Assembly: GCF_964188315.1 (NCBI RefSeq)
Contig: NC_135668.1
Location: 26,164,001 to 26,228,000 of the forward strand
From: Podarcis muralis
Taxonomy: Eukaryota
Direction of reading: 5' to 3'
DNA length: 64,000 nt
A program made the translations under genes and the position numbers. Of the stretch, positions 4,327-50,330 are shown piece after piece; position 1 is the stretch's first letter; each line of letters starts with the position of its first letter. Under the pieces are notes generated by a model. That model saw only the letters and a program-made list of their open reading frames with translations. It had not been told where the DNA came from and did not search any database.

Positions 4327-5177
4327 CACGTGTGACTCTGACAACCTCTCTAAGGGGCATGGGTTTCCATGTCTAAAAAAGTTTGTGGCAGGCTAGGCTC
4401 TAGATCAGAGCTGGCCCGATTCAGCCTCCCAAGAATTTGTTTCCATTGCATCTCCTCTCTTCTCCAGTAAGAACACACCATTCTGTCAGTGGCAGCAAAA
4501 ATAAAAATAAATGCAAAAAGAGTGCTAGGGTAGGCAGAAATATCTCCATTCAGTGGAGCACCCTGATTATGCCCCCTCCCTGGTCATGAGATGAATCATT
4601 TGATGAGCAAGAGCGAAAAGGAAAAACCCTCCTCAGCTGATCCACAAAGATGAGGAGGGTAGCTGGGTTTCTTGTGTGTGAGGTGACATCCATCACTAGC
4701 ATGTAGCCCCCAAAGGCTTTTCCAAGGCTGAATTTTGTCCCTTGGGACGAAGAGGGCCAGCCACCCCTCTCCAGAAAGCTCCAACCATTGTTCTGCAGGA
4801 CCCCAAAGAAGGGGGCATTTGTTACATACAAGTGTGATTTGCAATTAAAAGGCAAAGAGAAGTAGCTTCTCAACAATGGACAAACACACAGCACCATGGC
4901 AAGAAAACACCCCTAGCTGCCCCAGTACTGGCAAGATCCTTGAGAAAGCAATCAACAACCATGGGGGGGGGGGTTGAAGAGGGGCAGAAGCAAGAGTCAT
5001 GACAGGGGATAGGGAGATGGTCGAGAAGGGGGTGTGAGAGCTCAGTGTTGTCTCCACAGGTAGGCAGCAGCTCTCTGGGGTTTGAGGCAGGCACATCGGG
5101 GGCAAAAAACCCCAAAACAGAATGAAAAAGGGCTTTGCAGAGTTCAAAGGCGAGGGAACATGCTTATTCGCCATAAC

Positions 5178-6540
5178 ACCTTCAAAAAATAGAATCACAT
5201 GCCCCTAAACTAAACCAGAAACCAGTTCCTCTGTTATTATACGCAGACGATGCTGTTCTACTATCATTAACGAGCTTGGGTCTGAAACGTCTTATATCTT
5301 CTCTGATCCTTTACTGCGAATGTAACAAACTCTCTATAAATTATGAGAAGACAAAAATTTTGGTCTTCTCGAATGGTTGGAAATTAGAGAAATGGAAAAT
5401 AAGAGGGCAAGAAATCCAACAAGTGAAAATCTATAGGTATCTGGGAATCTTATTCCAGAGCAATTTAGGGTGGGCAAATCATCGCACAAATGCCATAAAA
5501 CAGGCAAAGTGCACCTCATCAGCAGTTGCCCGTTTTTATTATCAGAAAGGTAATCAATTTATTCCTGCGGCCAATCAGATATTTCAAACAAAAGTGCAAT
5601 CCCAGATATTCTATGGAATCCCGCTATGGGTCCAAGCATATAACAGTGATTTAAAAAAGATTCACTCCAGCTTTCTGAGACGTATTCTTGGACTCCCAGC
5701 TGTGATCAAATATGAAACAATGTGTGCAGAAATAGGCATACACACAATGGAATATTGGGCCTGGTCCACCTCAATAAAGTACTGGTTACGCTGCCATTTT
5801 CGCTGCCCTCCATCAAGTCTGCTCGCTGATCTGCTCAAAGACTCCTATAAATCAAGATGGTATCAGTACCTCGAAAAAAAGATTGAATCTTTAGGCATCG
5901 AGCTGGAGCCCCTGTACAATTCTAATGAGCAATACATTTTCCATAATATCCTAACTAGACTAAAGGATGTCGAGAGACAAAATATTATGGCAGCTGTAAA
6001 CAAAATTTGCTCCCCCATATTCTATGATTTAAATATCTTAGATAGCAGAGCCAATTACGTCACTAAATTAATAATCCCAGCCCAACGTAGGGCTTTTATG
6101 CTGGCCCGTTTGAATGTTTTTCCCTCAGCATTTGTCAGGGGAAGATATCAAAACATTCCTAGAAACAAGAGATTCTGCAGATGTTCTATGAATGTCCCGG
6201 ACACTGTAGAGCATATTCTCTTTCATTGCCCATTGTACAGTACGCTCCGTCAACGCGTGCTGTCCCCTCTTTTGGGTGGTCTGGAACCCCAGCAAGGTGA
6301 ATGTGTGGGATTCTGCCTATCCGACGTTGACCAAAGGGTAACGGCGGGGGTAGCCGAGTTTTTGGTAGCAGTCCTCCAAGGAGCAGGTTAACAAGGAAAA
6401 CCACTGATTCTATATGCATATATATATATATATGTATGTAGCCAACTGCTGCCTTTTTATATATATTTTAAGGCTTTTATATGTTATTTTCTCTTTCATG
6501 GTTTTATTTGCATAATGCCTAATAAAGGTTTGATAAGTAA
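5178..6540 (+). mobile_element. Young 5'-truncated non-LTR retrotransposon (RT C-terminal half plus CCHC domain; RTE-X/L2-group-like, clade uncertain)
   Basis: Uninterrupted frame 5180-6391 containing LLLYADDAVLLS (YADD at 5240-5251) and C-terminal CRC..EHILFHC. The 3' UTR has AATAAA. Perfect 16-bp TSD GCTTATTCGCCATAAC at 5162-5177 and 6541-6556. Confidence 0.9.
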
Positions 6541-29726: not shown

Positions 29727-29788
29727 CTCGAAGCATTGCTGTGGACTGAACCCTCCTCTCCTTGGCTTTTATCCGTATCTCTCATCAT
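29727..29788 (-). CDS. CHD2: CHD2 exon 2, coding part (start codon; 62 nt)
   Basis: ATG ATG AGA GAT ACG GAT AAA AGC... encodes MMRDTDKSQGEEGSVHSNAS(S), matching CHD2 [21 protein letters not shown]. Donor is AG|gtatga. Confidence 0.97.
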
Positions 29789-29865
29789 CTTTTTATTCTT
29801 AAATATTTAAGGGAAAGGTAGAGAGGTGGCTGTGTTTGCTTTGAAGTCCTGTGCCCAGGTATTTA
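29789..29865 (-). other. CHD2: CHD2 exon 2, 5' UTR part (77 nt)
   Basis: Acceptor cttttgacag|TAAATACCTGGGCACAGGACTTCAAAGCAAACACAG, resembling the human CHD2 5' UTR as recalled. It has an in-frame TAA upstream of the ATG. Confidence 0.85.
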
Positions 29866-30210: not shown

Positions 30211-30760
30211 CTGATTCAGGCACCGGCGCCAGGTCCAACCCGATATTAGTTTCGGGTCGTGGGAAAACATTAGCTCCAAAATATCTCAACGGCAACACGG
30301 AGAACGAAAGAAAAAAGCCCGATTTCTTTTGAAAAACAATAAAATAAGGCGTTTAATCCCAAACGATCTGCATTCGTTCAATTGCCAGAGGCGATAATTA
30401 GAGCCAAAAGATGGGGTAAAAAAGATCCGGAGAAAAAAGCTCATTAAGAGAGCGCACAAAAATGGAGGTACGCCATGGCTTCCAAGCTAGGAAAAACAAC
30501 GACCTGGGCTGCCTCCACGGCTGCTTCTTTCCAACAAGGCGAAGGGAGAGCGCCCCAAAAAGCTGCTTTTCTGCCCGAAAAACGCTCGATGCCCCCTACG
30601 ACAGTCCCCGCGAGAGGCTAGGGGCCTCAGGAGCCCCCTGAGGTAGCCAAAAAGTTGGGCAAAGTTGCGCAAAAGTGGCGGAGGAGGGGGAAAAAAAGCA
30701 GGGAGGCTCAATGCGCTCTCCAAGGCACAGCCGCCATCTAGAGCTTTCTTCCCAGCTCTG
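30211..30760 (-). other. CHD2: CHD2 non-coding exon 1 (~550 nt)
   Basis: Donor ATCAG|gtaggt at 30211 leaves a 345-nt intron 1. Blocks such as GCCTTGTTGGAAAGAAGCAGCCGT and GAAGCCATGGCG.ACCTCCATTTTTGTGCGCTCTC match the human 5' UTR as recalled. The 5' end is approximate. Confidence 0.8.
30444..30476 (-). CDS. Upstream ORF in CHD2 5' UTR (MAYLHFCALS*)
   Basis: aagccATGG strong Kozak context, 10 codons and TAA. Translation is not demonstrated. Confidence 0.55.
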   Translation of the reverse strand: MAYLHFCALS

Positions 30761-32874
30761 AGCTCTGCCTTTGATTGACACTCTCTACATTTACCCCACA
30801 ACTCAGGTGATGTACCATAGACCCACCCCTTCATTTCCACCCAAAAAGAGAGGGGGAGCCTCCACCTCAAGGGTGCATACCCCCCATCACTGGCATCTTC
30901 ATACCCAACTCCAATCTGTGGAGGAGGCAACTTAACCCCATCTGGTTCAGACACCCTTTCCAAGCCAAAAGAGATATTATTGGTTGCTTTTGTTGGAGAG
31001 GATTGCCTTAGATCACTGTCCTTGGGCTAAAATTACTTCCTCCTTGGACAGGAAGTTGTGGTGTAGCAAGCCATTTTGAAGGAATGGAAGCAAGACTGGT
31101 ATCCAGTGGGTTGGCACCAGTGGTTAACATGGGAAGGCTAATACCCCCAAAGGGTAATTTTTAAAGCAATTCATCAAGTAGCTTATTTCTGATAGTGCCT
31201 ATCAGACACAAATAGCCCAAAGCCATTAATCGTATAAAAGTAATTCCAATGGGCACAAAAATAATTATCTATTAGCCCTTTTGACTCAATAGCGCCACCC
31301 TAGTGGTTCTATTTGAAAAGGACAAAATTATTGTGCTGGAATTCCAATTTGCTGGTTACCAAGAGGGTGTAAAATAATTCTAACATAGCCATGGTTCTAT
31401 GACCCATTTCCTGAGCTCTTCATTTCAGCCACACTCCAATGACAAAAGCTTACGTCTCAAACATCAACAATTAACAAATCTATTTGGAACTCCTATGGAA
31501 AAGGTGGCACAAGAGTTGCTTGTCCAGTGACCATTCCCTTCCTGATTGGGATATTGGGTATTTCTCATAACCCCAAACATATGGAAAGCATGTTATACCA
31601 TTGAAAAATACCATGGATGGACAAATGTCTATCCTCCAGTGACAGAGCAGAAGGTCCAAGCAAATGACAAGTTCCATCACTAGAACCAATCTGTTGCCAC
31701 TTCCCCACATTATTTCAGCCCAACAAAGCTAGTATACAATACACAATTTCAAGCGAGCAATTTGAAGAATTTAGTTGAGAATTCTCTACAATGGAAGAAG
31801 GCTATTCTTGAAGGTAGGTTCCAAGTCTTCAGATTGATGAACACCTTTGGGTCAAAGTTAGTGGCCACCTGAGATTCTGACTAATACCTCAAGCAGAATT
31901 AAATATCCAAGGAATCACACTAGTCAGAATCTCAGGTGTCTTGCCTAAACCCAAACCACCACTAGGCAAGCCATACAGAATACACATTAAGAATGGGTAA
32001 TTGCGCAACTCCCATCTTTACAACATTAATATCAGAAACATGAACATCATACCCATCAATAAGACTCTTCAACAGCAATCTGGCAGTTTAGATCCAGTTT
32101 CCCCTTAATAATTATTCACAGCAGTATGTCAGAAAGAAAATGGACCTTCTAACCCCAAAATTATGTATCAAGTTACTAAGCTACCAGATCTGAGTTACTT
32201 GGTAGACATGAAGTGGCAATAGGTATTCAGTAATACAATAAAATGCATACGGTTAACTTTAATGGTGTGCATAGGCAATTATTCAACCTAACTTCTTTAT
32301 CTAGCTAGGGTTGATTAACCAACATGGTAGAATCAAAACATTACAGATTTGTACAAACAGCAATCCATTTAAAATACTGTTAAGTATGATCAAGAAAATC
32401 AGACCCACATACCACACCATAAGGAAATAAAACTATAATTAAATGTTTAGAAAAAGTGTTGGTTTTTCAATATGTGTATATTATCCAACTCTAGAGCTGT
32501 CATAGGAAACTCTAGGTCATAGTGTGATGGTGAGGTGACTACACATATTTGTGCCATTCTAAGATAGTTGCACTGTTCTGAAAATGTCTTGCTGACATCT
32601 ACCATCATTTATCCTAGATCAGGCAGACATAAAACCCATAGGAGGATAGAACCTTTTCCACCTAGCCAGAAAACACAGAATATAAAGCCCCAACCAAGAA
32701 TAAGATCCTACTAAAAACAGACAGCAATCTGAAAAGTTAGCAAGTATTTGAAATATCATTTCACAAAATAATAAATTCTTTCTGTAATCAAACAGTTCTT
32801 GTCAACACAACCAGTGACAGGAAAGATCAATACATTAAGAACCTTTAAGCCTGAAAGACGACAAACAAGATAAA

Positions 32875-33241
32875 AATGTAAAAAAACCACTTTTATTTAA
32901 GCCATTTAAAGTAGCACAGCACTTCTGCCAACAGGGGAGAAAAGTATGCATACATTCCTGGTTTGAAAATTCAGTCAGCCCATTCCATCCCCAATGCCAA
33001 ATAAGTTATATTGGAAGGGTCAGAAATCATTTGATTTTTTTAAAAATCCATTTATCAGATGATCATTAGCCCAAATCTTCTCTGGTTTAGATTACACTGA
33101 AGTTCATCCTAAAGTGCCCCTCTTGGTTCGACATAATCAGCAATCATGCAATAGTTCATTCCTCAACCTCTCAATCTGTGGAACTGCCATCTTGATTTGG
33201 AACTCGTTGTCTCCCTTTGAGATTCTTCCTTTGTCTGGACT
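32875..33241 (-). ncRNA. CHASERR: CHASERR terminal exon 5
   Basis: Long U-tract acceptor ttttcttttaatttttttttataaag|AGTCC. Contains AAGATGGCAGT (33183-33193) and ends after AATAAA. Confidence 0.72.
32892..32897 (-). terminator. CHASERR polyadenylation signal
   Basis: AATAAA followed by gtggtttttttaca and a GU/U-rich downstream element (cttgtttgtcgtctttc). Confidence 0.65.
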
Positions 33242-36200
33242 CTTTATAAAAAAAATTAAAAGAAAAATTCTGTTGGAATACAGGTAATTTTATCCTTAAA
33301 CTAAACAACCAACATTGAATTATCATATCTGAACACATTTTAATGTATTTTCAAACAACAAAAAATTTGAAAATTAGTGATGTCAGAGGAGCATTTAAAA
33401 GGTATTGAGAAAATACCGGCCATTTTTCAAGATTGCTATAGAGAAGGACGTAGGCAGAATTTTTTACTTTAAACCACTAAAACAAGAAAGGAAATGTACT
33501 GGTTCAAGACACAGTCTTTATGATCATGAGATTCACAACAAACATACTATAGGGAATATATTATTTTTTTAAAAAAATCTATGAAAGAAGAAACATTTTG
33601 TTCTGAATTCATAAAGTTTTGTTCAATTTCGTACAATTCTGTGTGGTTACACATTTAATTCATAAGGTGCACAGCTGGTGAATACATCACTTCCCAAACT
33701 TTTAAGACTATGGGTTATGCTACATGCCAGTCAGGGGGAAAACTGAGTAGACCCATGGCTATCTTATTTTTATCCATTTCAATGTGCCTGCTCTGAGTAG
33801 AACTAGCATGGGACACAGCCCTAAATATTATTTAATTTGTTGAATTTGTGTGCTGCCCTTCATCTGAAGATCACAGAGCAGTTCACAACATAAAAATACA
33901 AATTTAGAACACAAAATACATAATATCCTCCCATGAACACATTTAAAAGGCCATAAAATGTTAATCAGCCAAAGGCCTGGTTATATGTAGTTCAGTCTAG
34001 TGAACTCCCACACCAATGGGCACTACACCTGGGTGTTATATAGGCTGTAATAGATGCAACAAAATGAAGATTTCAAATAGCTTAAAACGTAAGCAATACA
34101 GTACTACTAGGGGACTAAACAAGTTCTGCTGTCCTTACAGATTTAATAAGGACTGAAGAAGTCATGGGAAGGTGGGGGCAGAGAACATGGCTAGAAGGTA
34201 GGACTGGCTAAATACTAATTTATCTCAGCTTAGTCTTTGGTTATATGACTGGCCCCAAGATCCAAATGAAAAATGGATTTGTTTCATCTTGATCCCTATG
34301 AACATAGAATAAACAGAACAGCAAAAATTTATAATCCTGCTACAAATTCCAAGAGGAGTAAGTATTCCCTTCAAATTAATTCTCCTGATTTAAGAATGAT
34401 TATTCACTAGGTTCAATTCTATATTGACACCCAAGGGCAACCGGGTGTTCTGGATGGTCTGGTTTTGTAGCCCTTTCACATTTGCCACCTCCTTCCTGTG
34501 CAGTTCTTAACTGTACCCATCTGTTACACTGGGTGTGACTGTAGTCTCAAGTAATAGCATTTAATGAATGAGACAGCACCAATTATGGTGGAGAGATCTT
34601 CAGGGTTTAAACCGCTTTGAAGTATGTGGGGTTTTTACCATCAAGCAGTGTATAAATTTTATGAAATAAAATAAAAAAGGATGATTTTAAACTTGCAGCA
34701 GATTTGTCAATACAACAGAATGTTGTAATAATATTTTGGCTCTCGGGCAACACATTTTCTTGAAATTACAAATTCAGTTTTGAAGAAAACTTCAAATTTA
34801 AGCTAATTCATGAAATCATGTTGGCACTTCTCACAAAATCATTGTCCAAATATTATTAATGTACAAACGGTAAAATTATCAAGACCAGAGATTTCCTTAC
34901 TTCAGGTTATAGCATAGAAACCCTGCTGCAGCCAAACCTGAAACATGGAACTATTCAAAATTTAACGAGGAAAAAATCTAATAATAAAAGTGAGTAGTGA
35001 AGCTAGGACTCACGGAACACTTGACTGGTTTGCCCAGATATAAAAACATTTCAAGTGTTTTTCAGCCCCAGAAAAATTATTTTGATCTACCATTACCACA
35101 ATGTTCTGTAGATGCATCAGCATAGTAGAAGACCATAGCCAGACTTATGGTACATCCACAAAAACTCAGGGCAGCACTTGTCTCAAAATAGGTTATAGGA
35201 AAGCTATCTCCATTTCTAGACACTACTATCTGCTTTCTTCATTTAGTGATCCTATCCTCCAATATACTCTACAATTATGGCATACAGAGCAGCTTACCAA
35301 TCCTTTGTATCCATTTTTCATTGGGTCATTGCAACAAAAAACTGGTCAAATATAAATTCAGCCAAGTCAAGTCATAACCAAGTATTTAGTAATTAATGAC
35401 CTACACTAGGAGAGCAGAGATGAAGAACCTATGGCCTTCCAGATGTTGTGGACTACCAACTCCTATCAGCCCTAAACAGCATGGCCATAGGTCAGGGATG
35501 ATGCAAGCTGCAAGTCCCAACAAGAGCAAGGCCATAGGTTCCCTGTCTTAAGAGAAAACTAAAAAAAGTGTTTTGGATCAAGGTACTCTAATATTGAAGT
35601 ATTGACCTTCTTCCACATTTTATTATTTAGTACTTTCAGAAGGATATACCTCTACAAAGGTGCTCTTAAAATCAGCAACATTGTAAACTGAAGTAAAGGA
35701 TGCAAAATAAGCTCAGCAGCTTTTTAAGTGTGTGCACAGATATTTTAGGAAGCTATGCAGAATATTCAATACTTTGCTTCCTATAAGAAGACTGACAGTT
35801 GAAAGTAGCATGTAGAGGTCAAGAGAACTAATTAGCAGTGTTTAACAAACATTTACATTTTGGTCTAAATATAATGTTAAGCTTCAGGTTTGACTCGCAT
35901 GTTGATACTTTGCGAAGTGCCAAGATAAACACACATTTGGGTTATTACTAATTGCTACTGGCAATCCATGGTAGATACAGAACATGGAAAAGGAGAAGAG
36001 TAAAGAGACCGATGGTGAACAGAAATCTCTAAGAAACACTTTTGAACTTGTTAGCAACAGAAACTCGTGGGGTGAATAATGTAAAGAACAGTCAGCAGGA
36101 GATCACAAATTAAAGGCTGACTTAGAGCAATGTTCCAAGGAATCCTGTGTTTCCTCAGAAGCATAACAAGATCCAAAATGGTGGGCAAGCTAATTGAAAG

Positions 36201-38139
36201 GAGGACTGCTAGGTGAAGAAAGATAGCAAATTATGGATATCATATACCAATATTTTTACGGGGGGGTGTCACCTCTGGATTTTCTAAGACACCAAAATGT
36301 CTTGGACTGCCTCACTCTGGATGCCAATACCAAACTCCCTCCAATGCAACAGGCATAGAGGAATGTTGGGCAGGTTCTAATACATAGATCTCTGTGTCAT
36401 TCAGGCTTCATCATTGTCCATGTTTGGTGTTTGTCTACCCTAGAACATGCTCAGAATCCTATGCAACTTCTTGGTTGCTCAGCAGGCATGATGTGGAAAG
36501 CCTCCCCTGAAGACAGAAGGTTTGAAGGCACTGGTCTTGACAGAAGTTTATTGAAATATGGCACTCAATTCAAAGCAACCAATTCCAGATAAATGTTATA
36601 GTTTTGGAGTTAAGAATAGCTTGATAGCATAAAAAATGCTGAATAATAGTACTTTAGTACAGGAAGCACTTTCACCCAATGACTTATAGTTTCCAATTAT
36701 GAATCTAAAATCTACTGCTAAAGTGGAATTTCAAATATACCTATTTGAAGAATACTGCAGTATGCTTAAGAATAAGGCAATATGCTGAGAGTTATGCTTA
36801 GGAATTAGGAACCTAATAGATGCAAGAGTCAACACAAGGAAGTACCAAACAAACTTGAATGTCCTAAAAAGTCCCTAAGTGGCATGAGCAAATGAAACTT
36901 AAGTTCTGGTGGGGTGGTTAATCTGCAGCCCTCCAAATGCTGTTGGAATACAGCTCCCATAGTTCCTGACCAGTGGTATAGTGATAAGAGTTGAAGTCCA
37001 ACAACATCTGGAGGGTCACAGGTTCCCAATCTCTGCTCTGAGCAAAGCCACACAACACCTCATACCTTAACAGCTATTTTAAATCAAACCACATAAGTGG
37101 CGTCTGTGAAGCAACCACTCCATAGCAGAGCTACCATATACTGATCTAACACTAGCCTTCTCTATATATAGTGGGTCACTTTAGAAGAATGGCTATCCAT
37201 ATGAAGGCAACGTCCACTGCATGCTATTTAAAGTGGCTCTCCCGCACAAGTGCTACTTGTGTTCAGTATGAGAGCATTTCTTTTCTTTTAAGCAAAATAA
37301 AAATTTTCTTCTCCAAAGACAAAGGTTTCCCACCACTCTCAAATTAATTTAACAAGTTGGTACCCTGGGACAGTAGTATACATTTTGGATCACCAATCTT
37401 TGTGACTAGAGGAACAATAAGGGAAATAAAGCCTGGTCTTCCTAAACTTAAAGGAGTGTCTAGCATACCCTTCTTTCTGCTTACTGCACAAAAAGATGAC
37501 TGAAAAAATCTTAAGACGTATACAAGCCAGTATGCACATTCAAAAGGTTCAATTTAGCAGACAGAAAGTATTCTAGAATGCTTACAGTATTGCAAATATC
37601 ATAGCATACTTTAAAATTAAGAAATTTGTGTACTATATCTCTCACTAAGACTCACTTTCAGTCCCATAAGGTAGAGTGGCTAACTGATTTAACCACACAA
37701 TCCAGAGTAGTCTGGAACAGGCAACAATTTTAGTACTCTACATGCACAACGGATTTGAACTTGCATATCAACACACATGTTAATCATATAAACCAGCCCA
37801 CAAAACTGAACATTGACAGAATTAAGAAGAGTAAAGCTTTTCGTGGAGTAAACTAATTTGGGCTGCAAGTAGGGGAATCTTGCATTTGAACATCTCCCAT
37901 GTAAAAAACACCAGCACATATTACAGACTAGCCCAGAGTGCTAGGTTGTCCTTAGTAATTTCTATATAAGTGTACAAATGTGTAATTTCTCTCCCTGCAG
38001 CCTACAGTGGTTCACCCCAGAACAGGAATAGCCTATGTAGTACCCTCCAGATGTTGCTGGACTACAGAATCCGTCAGTCCCAGCCAGCATAGCTGATGGG
38101 AAGGGAAGATGGAAGTTTTAGTTCAAGAACAGTTCAACA

Positions 38140-41100
38140 CATGGGAGGTGTGCTGTCTTCTAGGTACAAAGATTCACAATGTGACAGAAAAGTTGCTGAG
38201 TCTTATAAAGCCCACTGACCACAACTCCTTCCTTCTGATTCATGTGGGTACAAACATTACTGCCAAACACAGCCTTTGATGTATAACAAGGGACTATGAC
38301 ACTCTGAGCAGTAACTAAAAGGTGAGCAAAGGTGTTTTTTTCATCACTCCTTCCAGTTGAAGAGAGGAAAATACTGGGAGAAAACCAATGGCTGCGTAGG
38401 TGGTGTCATCAGGAAAAGTTTGGCTCTAGGACCATGGCCTCTGCTTCCTTGAGGAAGGACTTCTGGCAAGAGATAAATTGCACCTCACAGTGGTTGGCAA
38501 GACTGTGTTTGCTAAGAATCTCGCAAACCTGATCAGGAGAGCTTTAAACTAAATCCTGAAAGAGTGGGAAACAATATTACATATGTCAGGGGAACACCTG
38601 GTACTGGGGATAATTAGTGTCATTGATGCACAGGAACCTGAGGTGGTACTACAGAAGCCTGCTAAAGGGAATGAAACAACAAGAAGGAAGCAGCTGGAGG
38701 GAACGGTTTCAGTTGTCTGTATACTAATGCACAGAGGATGGGAAACAAGGAAGATGATTTTGAGCTCTATACAGAATGGCAAATATGACTCAATAGGCAT
38801 TACTGAAGCCCAGTGGATGAGACTCATGACTGGAATGTAGAAATTGAGGGGTGTAACTAGTTTAAAAGGAACAGATTAAACAGGAAGGGTGAATAGCATT
38901 ATATATAAATAATGTGTACACCAGTGAAGAAATCCACAACCTGGAGCATGGAAGACAAGATTGAAAGTAAATGGGCAAAGACTGTAGGAGAGGGAAACAA
39001 TAGTGACCTTACTGTGGGTGTCTGCCACCTCCAAGGTAGCCTGAAGACTTGGATGTCTTTCTAAAGCAGATTACCAAACATTCAAAAAGGAGAGCTATAT
39101 AGTAGTCATGGGAGACTTCTACTACCCTAATATCTGTTGGAACTCGAACTCTACCAAGAATTTAAGGTCTCACTGACAAATCCCCTTCCCAGATGGTGGA
39201 AGAAGCAACAAGGGGCTCATCTATCTTGGACCTGATCCTCAATAACTGCTCGATGAGGTGGAAATTGTGGAAACCTTGGGGGGAAAGTGACCATGTCCTT
39301 GTGGGTTTCATGATGAAGAGACAAGGGAAAGTTGAGTGTAGTCCAAAATGTACTGTGGGCTTCTAAGAAGGCTTATTTCAAAAAGCTTAAGGAACTACTT
39401 GATGAGATATAGTCCAGTGTTTCCCAACCTTGGGCCTCCAGCTGTTTTTGGACTACAACTCCCATCATCCCTAGCTAGCAGGACCAGTGGTCAGGGATGA
39501 TGAGAATTGTAGTTCAAAAACAGCTGGAGGCCCAAGGTTGGGAAACACTGATATAGTCAACTACTCAATGGGAAGTCCAAGATGGACTTGAGTTTCTTAA
39601 AGGTGAAATACTGAGGGCACAAGTGCAGACAATTCCAACAAGAAACAAAAATGGGAGGTACAAAAGAAGCCAGTGTGGTTGCATAAGGAGCTAACAGATG
39701 AGCTGAGATTTAAGGAGGACATGTATAATAAATGGAAGGATAAATATCAAAGGAAGAGTATAAATGAATAGCCAACACTTGCAAGGAGAAGGACGGGTGG
39801 ACTAAAGCTCAGGCTTGCAAGAGAGGTTAAAAATAATAACTAAGTTTTCTTTGGCTATGTTTGAAGAGGAAAAACAGGTGGTAGGTCCTTTGCGTGGAAA
39901 AGACGGGGAAATGCTATTAGGTAACAGAAAGGCGGAACCACTCAGCAGCTATTTTGCCTCAGTTTTCACCAAAAAGGAAAGCAGTGCTCAATCTGGTGAT
40001 AAAAGATGCAAGAGGGAGTTGCAGCCCAAGATAGGAATAGGTAGTAAGGGAACACCTAGCTACTTTAATGAATTCAAATCTCCAGGGCCTGATAAACTGC
40101 ATCCAAGGGTACTAAAGGATCTTGTAGATGTAATCTCAGAGCCTCTGTCTATACTATTTGAGAATCCTTGGAGAACAGGTAAGGTCCCTTCAGATTGGAG
40201 GCAGACAAATGTTGTCCCCATCTTCAAAAAGAGGAAAAAAGAAGACCCAGATAACTACTGACCAGTCAGCTTGACGTAGATACCAGGAAAGATCCTAGAA
40301 CAGATAATTCAACATTTGGTCTGCGAGCTCTTGGAAAAAGATGCTGTGATTACCAAGACCCAGCACGGGTATCTCAAAAACTAGTTATGCCAGATGAATC
40401 TTTCTTTGATAGGAGTTACAAGCTTGGTGGATCAGGAGAATACTGTGGATGTAGTGAATCTTGATTTTAGTAAGGCTTTTGACAAAGTCCTTCACAATAT
40501 TCTTGCGAGAAAGCTGGTAAAATGTGGGTTGAATGAGGAAACTTAGGTAGAATCGTAGCTGGTTGACTGACAAACCCAGAGTGCTAACTAATGATTCCTC
40601 TTCATCCTGGAAAAAAAGTAACGAGTGGGGTGCCACAGAGTTCTGTCCTGGGCCTGCTGTTCAACATCTTTATAAACGACTTGGATGAAGGAATTGAAGG
40701 GATGCTCATCAAGTTTGCAGATAAAATCAAATTAGGAAAGATAGCTAGTGCCACAGAATATAGAATTGGGAGAACTGGGCCAAAACTAGCAAAATAAATT
40801 TCAATAGGAACAAATGTAAGGTTCTACACTTAAGCAGTAATAACCAGCTACACAAATATAAGATGGGCAACACCTGGCTTACCAGTAGCACATATGAAAA
40901 GGATTGAGCATGAAACCACAAGGATATCATGAGTTAAAATGTGATGCAGCAGCAAAAAAAGCTAATGCTCTTCTAGGCTGCATTAACAGAAGTATAGTGT
41001 CCAGATCAAAGGAAGCAATAATACCACTCTATCCTGTCTTCAGTTCTGGATGCCACTGTTTAGAAACAATGTTGGCAGGCTGCAACATGTGCAGAGGAGG

Positions 41101-41538
41101 GCAACCAAGATGATCAAGAGTCTGGAAACTAAGCTTTATGAGAAACGGTTGAGGAAGTTGGGTGTGATGTTTAGCCTGGTAGAGAGAAGACTTGAGAAGA
41201 AATGACAGCCATCTTCAAATATCTAAAGGGCTGTTACACGGAAGATGGAGCAACCTCATTTTCTCCTGCTTTGGAGGATAGGACCTGAACCAATGGATTC
41301 AAATTAAAAGAAGAAAAGGAGATTCCGGCGAAACAACAGGAAGAACTTTCTGACATTAAGAACTGTCCAACAGTGGAACTGACTCCCTCAGGTGGTTTGA
41401 CTCTCCTTCCTTGGAGGTTTTTAAGCAGAAGTGGGATGGCCATCTGTCATGGATGCTTTAGTTGAGATTCCTGCATTGAAGTGAGTTGAACAAATGACCA
41501 TCTGGGTCCCTTCCAACTCTACAATTCTATGATTCTGT
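38140..41538 (+). mobile_element. Degenerate ~3.4-kb CR1 LINE (ORF1 esterase remnant, ORF2 endonuclease and RT remnants, 3' tail) in CHASERR intron 4
   Basis: EVCCLLGTKI..LLIHVGTN (SGNH-esterase-like ORF1), [52 protein letters not shown], ending ccttccaactctacaattctatgattct. Many stops and frameshifts. Confidence 0.9.
39415..39550. mobile_element. Palindromic hAT MITE inserted into the CR1
   Basis: CAGTGTTTCCC...GGGAAACACTG termini and exact 8-bp TSD ATATAGTC. Confidence 0.9.
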
Positions 41539-41737
41539 GAACATCTGAAGAGCACCGTGTTGGTTGCTGTAGCTCTATAAGTTTTACCAGTTGATTCTAC
41601 TAATTATCATTGTTGAATGGCTATTTTAATCAAGATTAAAATTATAGATCCAGAGATCCATAATTTAAGACATTTCCATAAAAATATCCAACATATATGA
41701 TTAAAAAAACTTTTTAAATCACAAGAAAGCGACTTAC

Positions 41738-41788
41738 CAGTGCTTCAATCAGCATCAGATATTTTACACATCCAGATCTTCAACATAC
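41738..41788 (-). ncRNA. CHASERR: CHASERR exon 4 (51 nt)
   Basis: Acceptor catgtctttccag|, donor CTG|gtaagt. Confidence 0.65.
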
Positions 41789-42266
41789 CTGGAAAGACAT
41801 GTTTTAACACACTAGATTCATTGAATGGATTTTAAATACGTCAGCAACATGATTCTGTCAACATCTACAAAGAAGTCAAGCTATTTGTTTAGTGAGTGTT
41901 CTTTCCCTTTAAATGAAGTTCAAAACTGAACCCAAAGCTAAATCCTATCATCTGTCCCCCAAAATTGTACACCCCAGTATGTATCAGGTTTTGAATAGCA
42001 GCCTACAATTTTCACATCATGATAAGCTTCATCTGTCAAAAATTATCATCAAATTGACACCACCACAATATAAAATTTATCCTGCAAGCTTATTTCCCTG
42101 TCCTATTGTTCCATAGCCAAACCTGAAGCATAATACAACAGAATGAAGCTGAAGAATTTCTGGAAGCAAAACAGAGGAACCACCACTGTACTATTATGAC
42201 GTGCAGCAGCACTAGAGTTAGGGTGATACGGACAGTTCCCTTGCACAGGACACTGAGCCAAAGGGC

Positions 42267-42301
<35 letters not shown>
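42267..42301. repeat. (TAA)n microsatellite
   Basis: Direct reading. Confidence 0.9.
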
Positions 42302-42303
<2 letters not shown>

Positions 42304-45300
42304 CACCTCCATTAAAAACAGCTGTACCAAAGGGAATTGTTGTAAAAAGAAATATTTTGTGGGACAGCAAATTTTGCCCTCGCTCAGGGTACAACATTAC
42401 CAGAATTTGCCCTGTGTGCAGAACTGCTTAAGATACAAAGTGACCTTGTGATTGCATTGCCTTTACAGCCAGTCTCCCCCCCCCTTTTTTTTTTTTTTAG
42501 GAGGAAGAGGTGAAGCAATTTCAAGTTGCAAATTTGCCCTCCAGAAGTTGCTGGGACTCCAGCTTCTATCACTCCTGACCACTGACCATGCTAGCTCGAG
42601 CTGAGGGGATTTGGAAGCCAACAATATTTGGAGGGCCAAGAGGTTCCCTATCACTCTTAAAACCTCATTTCAAAGGTGAAATATACTATAGTTTGTCATC
42701 TGTTTTCTAAACAGTCAAAGTTGTTGGTAATTAAAATATTCAGCACTTGACTCACGTTCTTCCTTCATGGGATCTCATTCCACAATCTATTCTGACTATA
42801 TTATACACACAGAGACTCTCTCTCACACACACAAACACATTTAACCAAGATTTGGGCCAGATAAACTGTTTCCAACATACAATACTGTTAAAACATCTTT
42901 ACCCAAATGTAAATCTAAAAACAGTATGGGAATTAGCACAGGTTTTGTAAGTATGTTGCCAATTTGTAGCTAAAATATAATACAGCAGAATCCATTTGTT
43001 TTGCTGTGCGCCAAAGAAAACACCAGGCTTCTTAGCGAGTTGAGTTCAGTTAGAAATCAACCTCAAGTACGAGTGTCCTGTCCCAGAGTACTTTTTCAAC
43101 ACAAGTCCCACAAATTCACAGAACTCATTTTCAGACAGCTGTGCTTAAAAAACAATTTTGGCATATACATTATTAAGTCACTTGACGCTTTAGGTTTTTC
43201 TCTTATCTGCCATTGTTGAAAAGGCTTTAGTTTTAGAGATTGGAACAGGAATAAGAAGAATGAGCAAGAAGTTCAAGACATCATAAAAAATTAATAGTAT
43301 GATCTCACCATGTAGCAGACCACAATGAGATCCCCTGGCAAACCTTAATTTCAATATATAAAAGTAGAACATTTCCAAAAATATACATTAGAGGTTTGGC
43401 TGTGCTGGGGATTTTTAATTTCTGGAGAAGTTATTGTATTCAGACCAAACAAGCTACTAAGATTATTTCATTCACAAATTCGGGAATAAAGTGTGGTATA
43501 AAACACATGACACTAAATACATTCAAAGGACAAGATAACTTAAGGTAACATAATTTTAATATTTTCTGATGTTAATAACTTGCTACTTCATTCAGAACTA
43601 TTTAATTACCACAGCCAGGTAATTTCCAACAAGAAAAACTATAAAACTTAGAAATGGGGGGAGCCCCTGCTTTGGACCAGGTATTTAAATATCCAAATAG
43701 CTCCTCAACTCAATCTCTGAATTACATATACAAGCACTTATCTTCCAGTTGCACCACAGCTCAAGAGAGCACAGGTGTTTTTCAATGTCCTGTCACATGC
43801 CATGGGAATTAATCTAGAATACTAAAGGGATTTATGTAAGGTTTTTGCAGTTGAATCCAGAGCACGGACTCAATCAAATAAACTTTGTGCATTTCCCTCT
43901 GAACTTTCAACACTAAAATATCATGGTCTGTGTTCTATGATATTCACCAGAGTGGCACAGGAAATATAAATTTATCTTTTAATTAAAAGCAGATTTGTGA
44001 GTGAGTTTTACATCAAAGAATGTTTTTAGGTATTCTGTAAGCCGCCCAGAGTGGCTGAGGAAACCCAGTCTGATGGGCAGGGTATAAATAATAAAATTAT
44101 TATTGTTGTTTTTAAAAGGTGGAATTCCTGTATTACTATTAAAACTACTATTTAGTTTACAGTATATCATTCCAGTCAGGTGTACTGGACATAGTACAGT
44201 ACCGACTTAAAAACCTTGGAGACCTGGGTCACAAAGCTTACTAGGTCACCTTGGGCCAGTTACCATTTTACTTTACAGGGCAACTATGAGGATGAGAGGT
44301 GGATACTGACACCAAATTGAGCTCTGCAGGGGAAATTAGAAGAAAAAATATGGGACTTCTATAAAGTAAATAATATTTATGATCAAACTGTTCAGTTGAA
44401 TGTAAGTCACATACGTACCGGGAAGAACTCTTCTACAAAAGATGTGACAGTTTTCAGCTAAGGGTTCCCAATTTAAGTCCATTTTATTTAATTACGATTG
44501 CAATCCTATGCACATTCAAGAGTCCAAGTCACGACTGAACTCAGTAGAAATTACTTACGTGCAAACATGCATCCAATTCCATTGTGTGTTTTACATTAGC
44601 ATTATATGTTTATTTAATTCAATTTGGTGCCCTTCAGATGTTTTGACCCTAACTCCCATCAGTCTCTGGCAACACAGGCAATGCTAAGTAAGAGATGAGA
44701 ACTATACTCCAGCAACATCTGTAAGGCACCACGTTGGGGAAGACTGCATTACAGGTTTAAATTGCACTAAGGATGTTGGTGCATTTTAATAAGAAATATT
44801 TTTGAATATTAAATAATTATTTCTAAACAAAGCAGCACTGCTTTTTGCTATTGTTCAGTCAAAACATTAAATGCCTTTAAAGAAATAAATTTAGTTTGAA
44901 AATTGTGTCAACCATCAGACTTGGGATTCCAAATTTGTCTTGCATTTGATTTATAGCGTTTTACTGTGCTCTTCAGTTGAAAAGGCTCCACAGTAGCTTA
45001 CAAATATGTACATTTACTTAATATATTAACTACCTTAAAACAACGCATTCAAAAATCAGTGACTGAGCAAGACAGAACATAGTTGAGATTACCAAAGTGC
45101 AGATATCCAAAAGTGCAGTAACAGGATGTACTTTACTGTGGTGGTCTTCAGTTCTGTATATGACGCAATGCATTAAGAAATGGGATTACTGGAAATCAGC
45201 ATCAGAAAATGGGATCATGTCATGGCTTAAAGTATAGGCTGGGGTGTCTGGTTAAAATCTCTGCTCAACCTTAACACGTTACGGGGGGCATTAGGCCCCA

Positions 45301-45636
45301 TAATCTGTCCTATGACTTGTTGAATGATTGAGCTAATATATGCCAGTCATTTTGAGCACTTAAGTGCTATATAAAGCTACGCATTTATTCCAAGCTACTT
45401 TCATTTGTAATGCTAAAACAATATTCGTATTTTCTAGTACCTCAGTTGTTTAAAAAGAGGTATGTATGGTTGATGCCTTGTTTAGAAGATGACATGGGCA
45501 ATACTACCCAGGGCCTTTGAAGTTGTAAGTATTTAATTTAAAGAGAAGCAAGAACTCTGTAAAAAAAAAACTTGCAAGCTGCAAACCGCAGGAGATACAA
45601 AATAGCTATTATTAGAAGTTGGGTAAACTAACATAC

Positions 45637-45705
45637 CTGAAGGGCATAACATGTTTTCTTCTGATGCCATCTGAATCTTCCCAGTTACCAGAATCCTGAT
45701 GCGAT
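45637..45705 (-). ncRNA. CHASERR: CHASERR exon 3 (69 nt)
   Basis: Acceptor tatgtttccttaaag|, donor CAG|gtatgt. Contains CAGATGGCAT. Confidence 0.62.
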
Positions 45706-46355
45706 CTTTAAGGAAACATACAAATTTGTGTTAAAATAGGAACACACAACACAGCCAACTGCGCTGTTGAGCATGAGTGTTTTGTTCCAAAGAATAACAA
45801 AATTTAAAAACTTTTTAAACAGTTACAGATAGGTCCTACATTCCAATAACATTCTACTGAGGTGTTTATTGGAATATACTTTAAGTAAATATATGTTGTC
45901 TTCTCTAAAGTTAGATTGGGTATTCAAGGTCGCCCATCCTTTTCTTCTCAATGTTGAGATTCATTTTCTTGCCCACTGCATATTCACTTCCTAAAGTTGC
46001 AATCTAATTCCAAATATGTCTAAATTTAGAAGTAAATGCCACTTATTTATCACTGGCTTCCTGAAGCATATCCTATTGCTACCTTCGATAAGCCACTTAC
46101 TTAGAAAAAGTCCTGTTGATTTTTCAATTGAAAATATTTCCAATTAGGTATTCTCACTATTCGTTTTATTAGTCAGAAATCTTAGATTTATTCTTTATTC
46201 AATTAAAAATGAAGAAGATAAATAGAAACAACCACACTGCATTCAATTTTAACAGAATTCATTATTTCATTCTTATTAGGGGAAATTATATACAACTAAT
46301 CAGTATACTGAAAACAGTGTACAGAACAAAAAATGAAGTTCAAAACCATTCTTAC

Positions 46356-46428
46356 CTTAACAAACAGTAAGTCTGTACAGGTCATCTGAAACACAGTTGT
46401 TACAGAAGTAGTAAACATTCACGAATAC
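46356..46428 (-). ncRNA. CHASERR: CHASERR exon 2 (73 nt; alternative internal acceptor at 46385 gives 30 nt)
   Basis: Acceptor ctttccttgtttag|, donor AAG|gtaaga. The internal tgtgtttcag| is also plausible. Confidence 0.6.
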
Positions 46429-48879
46429 CTAAACAAGGAAAAGCATGTTTAGGTTTATCTAAAAGTGTTTCATATTTGTCGTAACGGCATATTATGTATT
46501 GGAAGGGTTGTCTGTGCTAGGTGCATTTCTAAAGCTAAGCAATTTTCTAACTTAGCATAACATAACTAATAAAGGCATAGCGGGCTTTTTGTTCAATTTG
46601 TACTTTCATATACAAAATAGTAACAGCATCGTTATGGATGTTTATCCCTAAACGACTGTTCAAGCTAGTGTGAGTATATCTGAAGGTAAAAGTATTAGTC
46701 AAAAGTGCTTACCCTTTGCATTTACTCTCAAAAATGTTTACCCTTTATACAGTATTTAATCTCAAAATTCTGAGTAGTTACATCAAACAGCAACACACTT
46801 AATATTTTACCACCACTTTGAAACTCCAAAGTAGACAACCTAAACTGATAATCTTCTAAGTGTTGTTTTTGGGTCTCTGTGAAGTTTTCATCTTTATTAG
46901 TCCCGTGAAGTATCTAAATTCTACAACCTTCATGTTTGCACTTGAATTCATCTGTTTTCTTGCATTGATGTAGAAGTCTTTATGTAACTTGGTCACACTT
47001 AACTTTATTCATAAGAGCACACTATAAATTTCCTCTTTTTTAGAAGATCACAATTTCAGAAGATACATTAAATTAACCACTGATATTGATTATTTAATAT
47101 ATATACATACCTAAAAAATAAAATGAGTTATCTGCATGGCAAACAGTGGTTCTATCATCAGTTTAAACTAATAAGCCTCAAAAATATAAAATAAATTTGC
47201 TAACATGCTAATGATATACCAACTACTCATTTCATTGGTAGAACTTTATTCTCTGATAAATTTCTTATGTCACACAGTGTCCAAGCCACCTAAATGGTAA
47301 GCCTGAACAGGAAGATTCTAGAACAAGGACAAAGTAGTTAACACAACACCTGAACAAAATATAATTGCAGTTCTTCTACAAACAGAAACCCCAAATTTTA
47401 AGGCATAGAATCCAAGTATTAAAAGACTCCAGGAAGCTAAGGAAAAGCAATTGCTCAATATTCCATTTTAAGCATTTACTATTAATTCAGGTAAAAGGAA
47501 ATGGATTTTAAAATTAAATTTACTCCATTAAGAACAACAAGAAAATGTGATGCTTCTGAGACATATTGACATACTTAAAATAAAAAAACCCCTCTATGAC
47601 TTTTAAACTCCTAATTTTTTATTTTTATCCTACTGCATCCCATTTTACCAAGCTGTACTTTCCACTTATGTTTTCCAGTTCTAATTTAGAAGTTCACTCA
47701 ACTGTACAATTGGCACATACCAAAAATCCTTATGCATTTAAATAAGCTCACTAAATATTTCATCTTAAGCCCAAAGCATAAAAAGGCATCACTGGCACTT
47801 TCAGGTTAAAACACACACACAAATAAATTGTCTGTGTATATATATTTTCAACATATCATTTCAAAGTAAAGTTTTTTCCACAGCCGGTTTTTCTACTGGT
47901 AGTTTAGAAAGAGTTAAAAGCCAACACCCTACATACAGAAAAACAAGTTTTATATTTGAGAGAAAGAACAGACATGGCGCCTTTTGTTCTTACCAAAATA
48001 GAAATGGATTGTTTCCCCTTTTCAGAAGCAATGGTGAACAACAGCTCCCTTTCAAAGTACTTAGGAGTTTGCAGAAGACACATAAGGCACCTTTGATTTC
48101 CCTCCTCCAAATACTGTAAAGGGGTGCAGTCTACATTTGCGGCAGACCCCCACCCTATGATGCCCTACACAAATGCTGCATTGGGGCAACAACAAGCTGC
48201 ATTACAAAATATCTGCCCTTCAGGATTAATTATAGCAAGAAAATAGTTTGCAAAAAAACCCCCACACAGACCTTTTTCAATCAATATTAAGGGGAAAGTG
48301 CATCAAGTCCTTAATGTTGAGGATTAATTAGCCCCCCCCCCCCGCAAAAAAAAGAAATGGTGCATAAGATGGGGGGAGGCAACAGAGAAGAGAGAAGAAA
48401 AACTCTGGCTCAAATGGCGGCTCTGGTTTGACACCAACATCCTTGAAGATCAGATTCTGCGCCTAGATCGGGAGTCTATAGAGACAGAACCCCTAATTCA
48501 ATTTAGGAACTCCTTCAAAATGGAGAAGGGGTACTTTAACACCCCTTTAAATTACAAACAAGAACATGCTCAGTAAATAAAGCGAGAAAGAAGTCAGGGT
48601 GTTGGCTTCTTTCCACCCCAGCCTTGATTATCAGGTTTTGCCCTTGCCCCCAGAAGCCCCTCCTGGGCACCCCTAATTCCAATTAAGAAACCACACATCA
48701 AAGTGTGAGTTTTAATACATACCCAAGACTTGACAGGTAAAGGGCGAGGAACCGGGTCTTTTTCCTTCCTCTGCCGCTCTTTTTACGTGACACCCCCCTC
48801 GCCCAACTCCAGCTGCCAAGATGCCCCGAAATGGGGAAAATTAGGAAGGGGGGGTTAGGTCTTTCCCTTTTCCTTCCCA

Positions 48880-50330
48880 TAATCATAAAAAATCCCAGGC
48901 GAAGGAGTGAATTGTGTCTTTCTTGCCTCGGTTCTCATGTCCTGTCCCAGGAAGCCTTAACCCTCAGCACCTTCCCCCCCACCGATTTTAATTGGGAGGT
49001 GGGGAGACAGGACCCCCAACTGGAAAGAGAGGACCCTAAATCCGCCTTTGCTCCGAGTGAAAAAAAGGCGTCGAGGGGCGGCTAAAAGTGATGGCCGGCG
49101 GTTCTTTCCCGACAAACCACCACCTGCCTCTCCCAGGCGGCTCTCCTTTCTCAAGGACAAAGAGACAATGGCGGAGAAAGAGGATATGGAGGGCTGAAAG
49201 GGCGGACGATACTTACCTCCCAAAGCGGGAGAGACGAGGCGGGCAAACCGAAAGGGGCTCGCCGGGCGCAGCCGCCGCCGCCCCGAGGACAAGCCGAGCC
49301 AGCCCTGCCGCATAGGCGCCTCTCTTTGCGGTTGTTTTTTCTGAGGGGTTGGGGGTCGGACAGGCCACCCCCCATTTCAGGAGCCTGGGCCCAGCCGGAG
49401 AGCCTCCCCACTCCTCAAGCGAGCGGCCGCCTCGGGCCAGGGGGGTGGCCGGAGGAACAGGCGCCCGGGACAGGGAGGGAAACGGCAGCAGCGACCAGCG
49501 GAGGCTCCTGTCTCCCCGGCCATCTTGTGCCGTATGTGCGTGTGTGTGAGGGAGCGAGGGAAGTGAAGTCTGTGCCCGTCTTCATTGCCTCTCAGCGAAG
49601 CCTTCCTCTCCTCCCCCTCCCCCACCCGCGCCCCTACCCAGCATCACAAAATGGCCGCCCTCCGCTCCCTCAGCAACGGCTCTGCGGCAGGGGGAGGGGG
49701 GAGAAGGGAGGGAGGCGGGGCCCGCGCACGACGCAGCTCTCCACCCGCCTCCCCTCCATCCAGCTGCGCATGCGGGCAAGCCGCTTTTCTATTGGCCTTC
49801 ATTCCTCCTCACGCCCATTGGTCGCTCTGCTTTGGCATTCGCCTGTCACGGGGCTGTGGGATTCCTATTGCTTGGTTTTTTCGCCACCGCCTTGTTGTCA
49901 TCTGCTCTCCGACAGCTGCTGCTCCCGCCTCCTCCTCACCACCCTCCACGAACTATAACTGGCTGAGACGCGAGTCCCTCAGCTGCCTCTTCTTCTTGAT
50001 TGGCGGGTATAGGGTTGCTCCCGCGCCGCCCCCCTGCCCCTCGCTCTTTCCTTGCTACTTTGCAACGGTTTTCTCTGTACCCTTCGCTCGGCCCCTTCGA
50101 TGGCGAAACACCTCACCGTCCCCCCCCCCCCCGCCCCTCTCACGCTTCTTGCAGAGCTACAGAAAATACGCGAAGGGAGGGAAAGCTGCCGAAGCTGCTG
50201 ATGGGGTGGGGGGAGGGGGTTGGCGCGGTTATTGCGCGTGCGCGCAGGGTCATCACTCGCCCTTCCCCCACGCTCCCTCCATCTGTCAAGCGCGGTGTAT
50301 GTCGCTCCCACAGATGCCGCATCACAATGT
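48880..50330 (-). promoter_or_regulatory. Large CpG island, CHASERR promoter
   Basis: Very GC- and CpG-rich. NRF1-like TGCGCATGCG at 49765-49774, several CCAAT boxes on the minus strand (~49790, 49815, 50000), GC box GGAGGCGGGGC at ~49711, and YY1-type motifs at 49517-49526 and 49648-49659. Confidence 0.85.
49217..49600 (-). ncRNA. CHASERR: CHASERR exon 1 (5' end approximate)
   Basis: Consensus donor GAG|gtaagt at 49217 inside the CpG island. The TSS is inferred to lie between the CCAAT/NRF1 cluster and the downstream AAGATGGCCG. Confidence 0.65.

Follow-up and report, generated by a model that had tools for sequence, protein, structure and literature searches.

The stretch of DNA analyzed here, referred to below as the window, comprises 64,000 nucleotides of the lizard Podarcis muralis (assembly GCF_964188315.1, contig NC_135668.1, positions 26,164,001 to 26,228,000), and all coordinates are positions within it. 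Along its minus strand run, in order, a CpG-island promoter, the five exons of a spliced long noncoding RNA (lncRNA), and, downstream of these and in the same orientation, the N-terminal exons of a gene of the CHD2 type (Table 1). An earlier note on this DNA had reconstructed the five exons and identified them with the lncRNA CHASERR. We regard it as highly probable that the locus is the lizard orthologue of CHASERR, namely, a five-exon, spliced, and polyadenylated lncRNA of ~0.95 to 1.1 kb located upstream of the chromatin-remodeler gene CHD2. We are likewise confident that this RNA begins at a CpG-island promoter of its own and ends with an AATAAA that precedes the equally oriented CHD2 promoter by ~2.1 kb. 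The transcript, its strand, its four junctions, its robust expression, its 3' signal, the conserved elements, and a neighbor of the CHD1/2 family are all direct observations.

Table 1. Features of the lncRNA and of the adjoining CHD2-type exons, in the order of transcription. ORF, open reading frame; TISU, translation initiator of short 5' untranslated regions; TSS, transcription start site; UTR, untranslated region.
Feature	Position	Strand	Remarks
CpG-island promoter region	49100..50300	-	CCAAT boxes at 49821, 49795, and 50003; NRF1-like GCATGCGC at 49773; GC boxes
Exon 1	49217..49600	-	3' end exact by reads; 5' end uncertain, ~49530 to ~49760
TISU/YY1-type element CAAGATGGCCGG	49516..49527	-	AUG at 49523 opens a 48-codon ORF, MAGETGAS...
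Exon 2	46356..46428	-	73 nt; both junctions in RNA-seq; identical in P. lilfordi
Exon 3	45637..45705	-	69 nt; both junctions in RNA-seq
Exon 4	41738..41788	-	51 nt; both junctions in RNA-seq
Exon 5, terminal	32877..33241	-	~365 nt; acceptor at 33241 by loose-end sequence; 356 nt in X13 contig
Core AAATCAAGATGGCAG	33184..33198	-	+44 to +58 of exon 5; AAGAUG/RRAUGG core of the motif-containing region
AAATGGA (LncLOOM motif 2)	33047..33053	-	+189 of exon 5; motif defined in PMC7798263
AATAAA polyadenylation signal	32892..32897	-	GU/U-rich element GTGGTTTTTTTACATTTTTATCTTGTTTGT downstream; cleavage expected near 32877
Spacer, lncRNA 3' end to CHD2 promoter	30761..32876	-	~2.1 kb; neutral rate against P. 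lilfordi, 63 differences versus 58.6 expected
CHD2 exon 1 (5' UTR)	30212..30760	-	TISU-like CTAGATGGCGGC at 30730-30741; donor at 30212; TSS predicted; P0001 maps here by tblastn
CHD2 exon 2	29727..29865	-	Start codon at 29786-29788 (MMRDTDKSQGEEGSVHSNAS); tblastn of P0001 and P0032

Splice junctions and strand

The exon structure was compared with two raw, stranded, paired RNA sequencing (RNA-seq) runs from different samples (X23 and X24), ~12% of each being aligned to positions 41700 to 47699, together with additional RNA contigs from P. muralis (X5) and those of a sister-species run (X13). The earlier note had proposed such a mapping over its four predicted junctions; every one of them was found, with 32 to 136 reads each, and the runs and contigs match the five-exon minus-strand model to the base. 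At the junction of exons 1 and 2 (49217^46428), 32 and 36 loose-end reads continue behind 46430 with the reverse complement of a sequence ending in GTTTGCCCGCCTCGTCTCTCCCGCTTTGGG, the end of exon 1. Exons 2 and 3 (46356^45705) are joined by 71 and 58 reads, with agreeing contigs in X5 and X13, and exons 3 and 4 (45637^41788) by 98 and 89. At the latter junction, the aligner can shift the cut within 10 nt, as exon 4 and intron 3 both open with GTATGTT; the sole GT..AG cut within this range is the predicted one. The junction of exons 4 and 5 (41738^33241) is crossed by 136 and 127 loose-end reads (agreement of 0.98 to 0.99), and the reads leaving at 41738 continue with TCCCTTTGAGATTCTTCCTTTGTCTGGACT, matching in reverse complement the 30 nt with which exon 5 opens at 33241.

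All aligned reads have their first mate on the plus strand, and the skipped segments read CT..AC on that strand (i.e., GT..AG on the minus strand), which together place the RNA on the minus strand. Read depth is 28 to 40 in the three exon-containing bins of the aligned region versus 0 to 3 in most intron bins, and a single sister-species contig of 519 nt in X13 joins 45 nt of exon 2, the whole of exons 3 and 4, and 356 nt of exon 5. The lncRNA is thus not only spliced as drawn but also abundant. The splice sites had been described earlier as good GT-AG sites, and all eight of the splice positions are indeed present, with exons 2 to 5 following AG and exons 1 to 4 preceding GT. The donors after exons 1 to 4 (GTAAGT, GTAAGA, GTATGT, and GTAAGT) each agree with the donor consensus at 8 of 9 positions, and the acceptors of exons 2 to 5 have a polypyrimidine content of 0.55 to 0.82 over the 22 nt upstream.

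Several smaller observations concern the internal exons. Ligation of exons 3 and 4 recreates CAG|GTATGT, an 8/9 donor, the corresponding site in Podarcis lilfordi being GTATGC; reads indicating the skipping of exon 4 are not found among the best-supported loose ends. At position 45699 in exon 3, all reads have A>G relative to the assembly (79/79 and 72/72), and at position 46412 in exon 2, all have T>C (64/64 and 63/63); the X5 contigs agree in both cases, and these mismatches suggest variation between populations or strains more than RNA editing. Five X24 reads exit exon 2 at 46396 into unrelated sequence (GGGGCTGGAGCTCTCTCTCATAGTCCAACC on the plus strand), which may represent a minor alternative upstream exon or a chimera. 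Within intron 3, the segment from 43900 to 44100 has a summed contig depth of 4061 in X5 and 198 in X13, with loose ends of the AAT/ATC type; this is repetitive sequence, simple or interspersed, that does not belong to the gene.

Promoter and first exon

The proposed start of the RNA in a CpG island is in keeping with the base composition: the region from 49100 to 50300 has a GC content of 0.65 and an observed/expected CpG ratio of 0.73, the peak at 49 to 50 kb is the sole strong G+C peak of the window, and exon 1 itself has a GC content of 0.68. Between 49601 and 49900, RNA contigs cover 36 to 52% of the sampled words versus 76 to 100% in DNA runs. These RNA words upstream of 49600 may stem from an exon 1 that starts at ~49720 to 49760 or from a divergent plus-strand transcript of a bidirectional promoter. 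Alternatively, by analogy with mammals, the TSS of the lncRNA could lie just upstream of 49527.

The latter position is the edge of a TISU/YY1-type element. The ORF of CHASERR has been reported to start with a TISU-like CAAUAUGGCCGG very near the 5' end (10.1101/2025.05.28.656657). When the published mammalian CHASERR ORF start, CAATATGGCCGG, was searched for with at most one mismatch, the sole match in the window was CAAGATGGCCGG, which agrees with it at 11 of 12 positions. Another TISU/YY1-like sequence, CAAAATGGCCGCC, is seen on the plus strand at ~49647-49659, in the opposite orientation and ~120 nt from the CHASERR TISU. We also considered GCCATTTTG at 49655 as a homologue of a mouse Chaserr quantitative PCR primer, and hence as exonic; this candidate was dropped as unsupported, the position of the primer in mouse being unknown.

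Terminal exon and 3' end

The core of the terminal exon, AAATCAAGATGGCAG, is exactly the same 15 nt as found in exon 5 of mouse Chaserr, where it occupies +41 to +55, an offset differing by 3 nt from that of the lizard; ~1e-4 exact matches of 15 nt are expected in 128 kb. The mouse sequence used for this comparison is a 330-nt exon-5 oligonucleotide printed in a supplement. When 18 nt of the mouse core were searched with three mismatches allowed, a single match was obtained in the window, and it lies inside exon 5. Over the ~70 nt after the core, a side-by-side comparison by eye suggests that the collinear blocks TTGAGGAA, TGCA, TGCTG, ATTAT, and AACCAA are shared with mouse, the collinear identical blocks relative to the oligonucleotide measuring 15, 8, 4, 5, 5, and 6 nt.

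AAGATG followed by G occurs once in exon 5, at +49. The hexamer RRATGG is present five times in 367 nt (at +50, +189, +252, +257, and +335) versus 0.56 expected by shuffles and 0.59 by the window background (P of ~0.0005 and 0.0016, respectively); it is, then, enriched without clustering in the first 100 nt of the exon. In 14 presumed RNA runs from P. muralis and two close relatives, 0.65 to 0.85 of the sampled words of exon 5 are present.

The AATAAA that had been placed ~2.1 kb before the CHD2 TSS was found at 32892-32897, the TSS itself being a predicted position. It is the only AATAAA on the minus strand between 33300 and 30700, the other signal there being one ATTAAA at 32263. The X13 contig ends at ~32886, ~10 nt past the AATAAA. 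The signal, the GU/U-rich element that follows it, and the end of this contig together point to an independent polyadenylated transcript.

Conservation in Podarcis lilfordi

The P. lilfordi locus aligns over the whole length of the window, with introns differing at 2.7% of sites (97.3% identity), a divergence that is too low for finer inferences on constraint. Exons 2 to 5 have accumulated 7 substitutions versus 15.3 expected (P=0.014). The block from 49501 to 49830, which spans the core promoter, both TISU-like elements, the NRF1-like site, and two CCAAT boxes, has 0 differences versus ~9 expected. P. lilfordi has kept every splice site, the motif core, the remaining RRATGG motifs, and the AATAAA.

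Relationship to known CHASERR genes

CHASERR has been described as a five-exon gene in tandem to CHD2, with its structure and parts of its sequence conserved throughout vertebrates (Rom et al. 2019, PMC6841665); Fig. 1a of that study includes a lizard RNA-seq track (SRP009831). Ross et al. (2021, PMC7798263) defined homologues by proximity to the CHD2 TSS together with five exons, found the first exon to be extremely G/C-rich, listed a “Lizard” CHASERR in their Table S1, and reported AAAUGGA in the last exon of 11 of 16 species. Further, the last exon opens with a motif-containing region rich in RRAUGG, which has been found to couple splicing of that exon to polyadenylation (10.1101/2025.05.28.656657).

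The P. muralis locus has multiple parallels with mouse 1810026B05Rik/Chaserr and human LINC01578/CHASERR (PMC6841665). As in these, the lncRNA lies in tandem with CHD2 on the same strand, the gap being ~2.2 kb in mouse and ~2.1 kb in the lizard, and its architecture comprises five exons, with a CpG island as promoter, a first exon rich in G/C, a ~0.37-kb terminal exon with AAUAAA, an AUG in TISU context opening a short ORF that ends upstream of the exon junctions, and broad, robust expression. With mouse Chaserr, it additionally shares the AAGAUGGCAG core at nearly the same offset, the AAAUGGA, and several RRAUGG motifs. However, the sequence is diverged outside short blocks, and the ORF has 48 codons in the lizard as opposed to 41 in human and 117 in mouse. 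Thus, the identification as CHASERR made in the earlier note finds support in position, exon count, the G/C-rich first exon, the last-exon motifs, the polyadenylation signal, the TISU AUG, and the 15-mer shared with mouse.

The lizard CHASERR of Rom et al. (2019) and Ross et al. (2021) is the same gene, from the same reptile order and recognized by the same features (proximity to CHD2, five exons, and RNA-seq), although the species is probably different from P. muralis. As the gene, a lizard copy, and its conservation across vertebrates have all been published, the P. muralis locus is an orthologue in another species, a new member of a known gene and not a new kind of gene. A TISU element resembling SAASAUGGCGGC near the 5' end likewise occurs in another conserved lncRNA, Cyrano/OIP5-AS1 (10.1101/2025.05.28.656657), but its locus, architecture, and function are unrelated, and the likeness is confined to the promoter/translation-start element.

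Some points weigh against this identification or limit its reach. Homology at the sequence level rests on short blocks, and the lizard last exon has one RRAUGG in its first 100 nt, whereas that of mouse has four, which fall in its first 80 nt. Downstream of the TISU, exon 1 evolves at the neutral rate (10 differences versus 10.5 expected). The TSS and the exact poly(A) site of the lizard lncRNA are predicted positions, the designation of the neighbor as CHD2, as opposed to CHD1, has no backing from any database name, and cis-repression of CHD2 in reptiles would be purely an extrapolation.

Coding potential and alternative explanations

The ATGs of exon 1 had been said to stop early and the spliced RNA to have no long ORF, which is roughly right, the ORFs having 41 to 76 codons. 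The longest, of 76 codons, ends 1 nt before the junction of exons 2 and 3; a frameshift shortens it to 60 codons in P. lilfordi. The TISU ORF, of 48 codons, ends in exon 1 and has the same length in P. lilfordi with two amino-acid changes. Judged by sequence, no ORF of the lncRNA looks protein-like. An Rfam scan of 29000 to 51000 gave no family at the gathering score, but CHASERR has no Rfam model, and the scan is hence uninformative.

The pattern of splice sites could in principle have arisen by chance, as short AT-rich exons with GT-AG flanks are easily found by eye; nothing of this explanation was left after testing, hundreds of junction reads from two runs at the exact predicted coordinates having refuted it, and we accord it next to no probability. 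Alternatively, CHD2 could have a distal promoter whose transcripts use these exons as optional upstream 5' exons, with no independent lncRNA gene. The exons do share the strand of CHD2 at a distance of only 2.1 kb, a P. lilfordi gene model (CAI5792684.1) chains CHASERR exons 4 and 5 to CHD2 exons 1 to 4, and CHASERR-CHD2 fusion mRNAs occur at a low level in mouse, human, and zebrafish (10.1101/2025.05.28.656657). Nevertheless, 98 to 99% of the reads leaving exon 4 (136 and 127 reads in the two runs) enter exon 5, and at most 1 to 2% go elsewhere, though fusion transcripts were not searched for specifically. Moreover, exon 5 carries an AATAAA and a GU-rich element at which the sister-species contig stops, and two GC-AG introns have to be assumed in the P. 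lilfordi model, one of which measures only 42 nt and bypasses a TAA, as is typical of prediction artifacts. We therefore consider such an origin of the exons very unlikely.

It is also conceivable that the main product of the locus is a micropeptide, the 48-amino-acid (aa) product of the ORF starting at the TISU AUG, with the RNA serving mainly as its mRNA. A counterpart exists in the 41-aa “TGCB” peptide from human CHASERR exon 1, which starts (M)AGEAAAPR; the first four codons of the lizard ORF (MAGE) agree with it, the CAAGATGGCCGG context of the AUG is conserved with mammals, and the ORF has 48 codons in both lizards. However, two of the three substitutions in this ORF between the two lizards are non-synonymous in a part of exon 1 that evolves at the neutral rate, the length of the ORF varies by species (41, 48, 101, and 117 codons), and the constraint falls on exons 2 to 5 and the promoter and not on the body of the ORF. 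Further, TISU is also a core-promoter element of the YY1 type, which would explain the conserved first codons; the agreement in MAGE is as expected if the TISU/YY1 element, and not a peptide, is what is conserved. We consider a micropeptide unlikely as the main product of the locus.

Possible function and significance

In mouse and human, and only in these, CHASERR is known to repress CHD2 in cis, with its loss raising CHD2 levels. If the same applies here, transcription and processing of the lncRNA beside the CHD2 promoter would lower the output of CHD2 in cis, and would do so within a negative feedback loop controlling CHD2 dosage. Carrying over the mouse and human findings, the last-exon motifs might control the termination of this tandem transcription unit. 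By homology, the TISU-initiated short ORF, ending as it does upstream of exon junctions, may make the RNA a substrate of nonsense-mediated decay. By extension from mouse genetics, the CHASERR-CHD2 circuit may be intact in the lizard, as the earlier note proposed.

These results indicate that a real lncRNA gene can be reconstructed to the base from a reading of raw sequence. They add a lacertid lizard to the species in which CHASERR has kept its place, its number of exons, its TISU start, and the motif core of its last exon, and they support an origin of the CHASERR-CHD2 arrangement and of its processing signals before mammals and reptiles diverged. This evolutionary support is modest, and no new question is opened; earlier publications already cover the gene, its conservation among lizards, and how it acts in mammals.

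The CHD2-type neighbor and its gene models

The identity of the downstream gene was established indirectly, through the adjoining P. lilfordi gene model of 1721 aa, which combines Chromo, SNF2, Helicase_C, CDH1_2_SANT_HL1, HTH_CHD1_Hrp3, and CHD1-like_C domains, the architecture of CHD1/2. We take the neighbor to be CHD2 rather than CHD1, going by the N-terminal sequence, which matches CHD2, together with this domain architecture. A HMMER search with the long acidic CHD2 exon against 1.84 billion representatives returned short unnamed fragments only; the best match was a 201-aa “hypothetical protein” of P. lilfordi, and the cluster names were likewise “hypothetical protein.” Similarly, a protein atlas search with the first long CHD2 coding exon recovered only acidic low-complexity look-alikes. 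The ATG at 13938-13940 was considered as the CHD2 start and ruled out by tblastn, the true start exon being 29865-29727; the segment 13899-13680 is CHD2 exon 3, with a 3' splice site before it. The 3' part of the CHD2 5'-UTR exon was mapped by tblastn to 30325-30212.

Relative to P. lilfordi, CHD2 exon 1 has 3 differences versus 14.5 expected. We infer a CHD2 TSS near 30750-30775, ~2.1 kb from the lncRNA poly(A) signal, because the near-perfect TISU/YY1 element CTAGATGGCGGC sits in an almost invariant block from 30400 to 31150. The same element opens a 9-codon upstream ORF in the CHD2 5' UTR, and the context of the CHD2 start codon, AAAAAGATGATG, contains RRAUG, as do the CHASERR motifs.

The P. 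lilfordi model CAI5792684.1 (“hypothetical predicted protein,” 201 aa; OX395139.1, L001:10001-41649) starts at an ATG in CHASERR exon 4 and maps to 41755-41738, 33241-33188, 30325-30212, 29865-29727, 13899-13680, and 12520-12434 of the window. It crosses the real junction of exons 4 and 5, jumps from just after AAGATG in exon 5 (AAGATG|GCAGTT) to a point midway in CHD2 exon 1 by way of a GC-AG “intron,” and cuts a 42-nt GC-AG “intron” with a TAA from CHD2 exon 2; the rest of CHD2 is the separate model of 1721 aa. On these sequence features, CAI5792684.1 is probably an annotation artifact that hides the lncRNA and splits CHD2. A likely annotation error is thereby flagged in a related public genome, in which lncRNA exons are merged with 5' exons of CHD2 and CHD2 is divided in two. 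Alternatively, the AAGAUG|GCAG core conserved in the last exon might function as a weak 5' splice site of the GC type or bind U1; this is the very point from which the P. lilfordi model splices into its CHD2 exon 1 acceptor. We hold this reading to be quite improbable. Were there such a GC-type site, CHASERR-CHD2 fusions of a second type would be formed in lizards, and this would suggest a way in which last-exon definition, polyadenylation, and read-through into CHD2 are coordinated by the RRAUGG motifs.

Inside a CHD2 intron, on the plus strand at 5177-6388, there is a 404-codon frame with a reverse-transcriptase signature of the YADD type (…LLLYADDAVLL…), which is probably the remnant of a long interspersed nuclear element.

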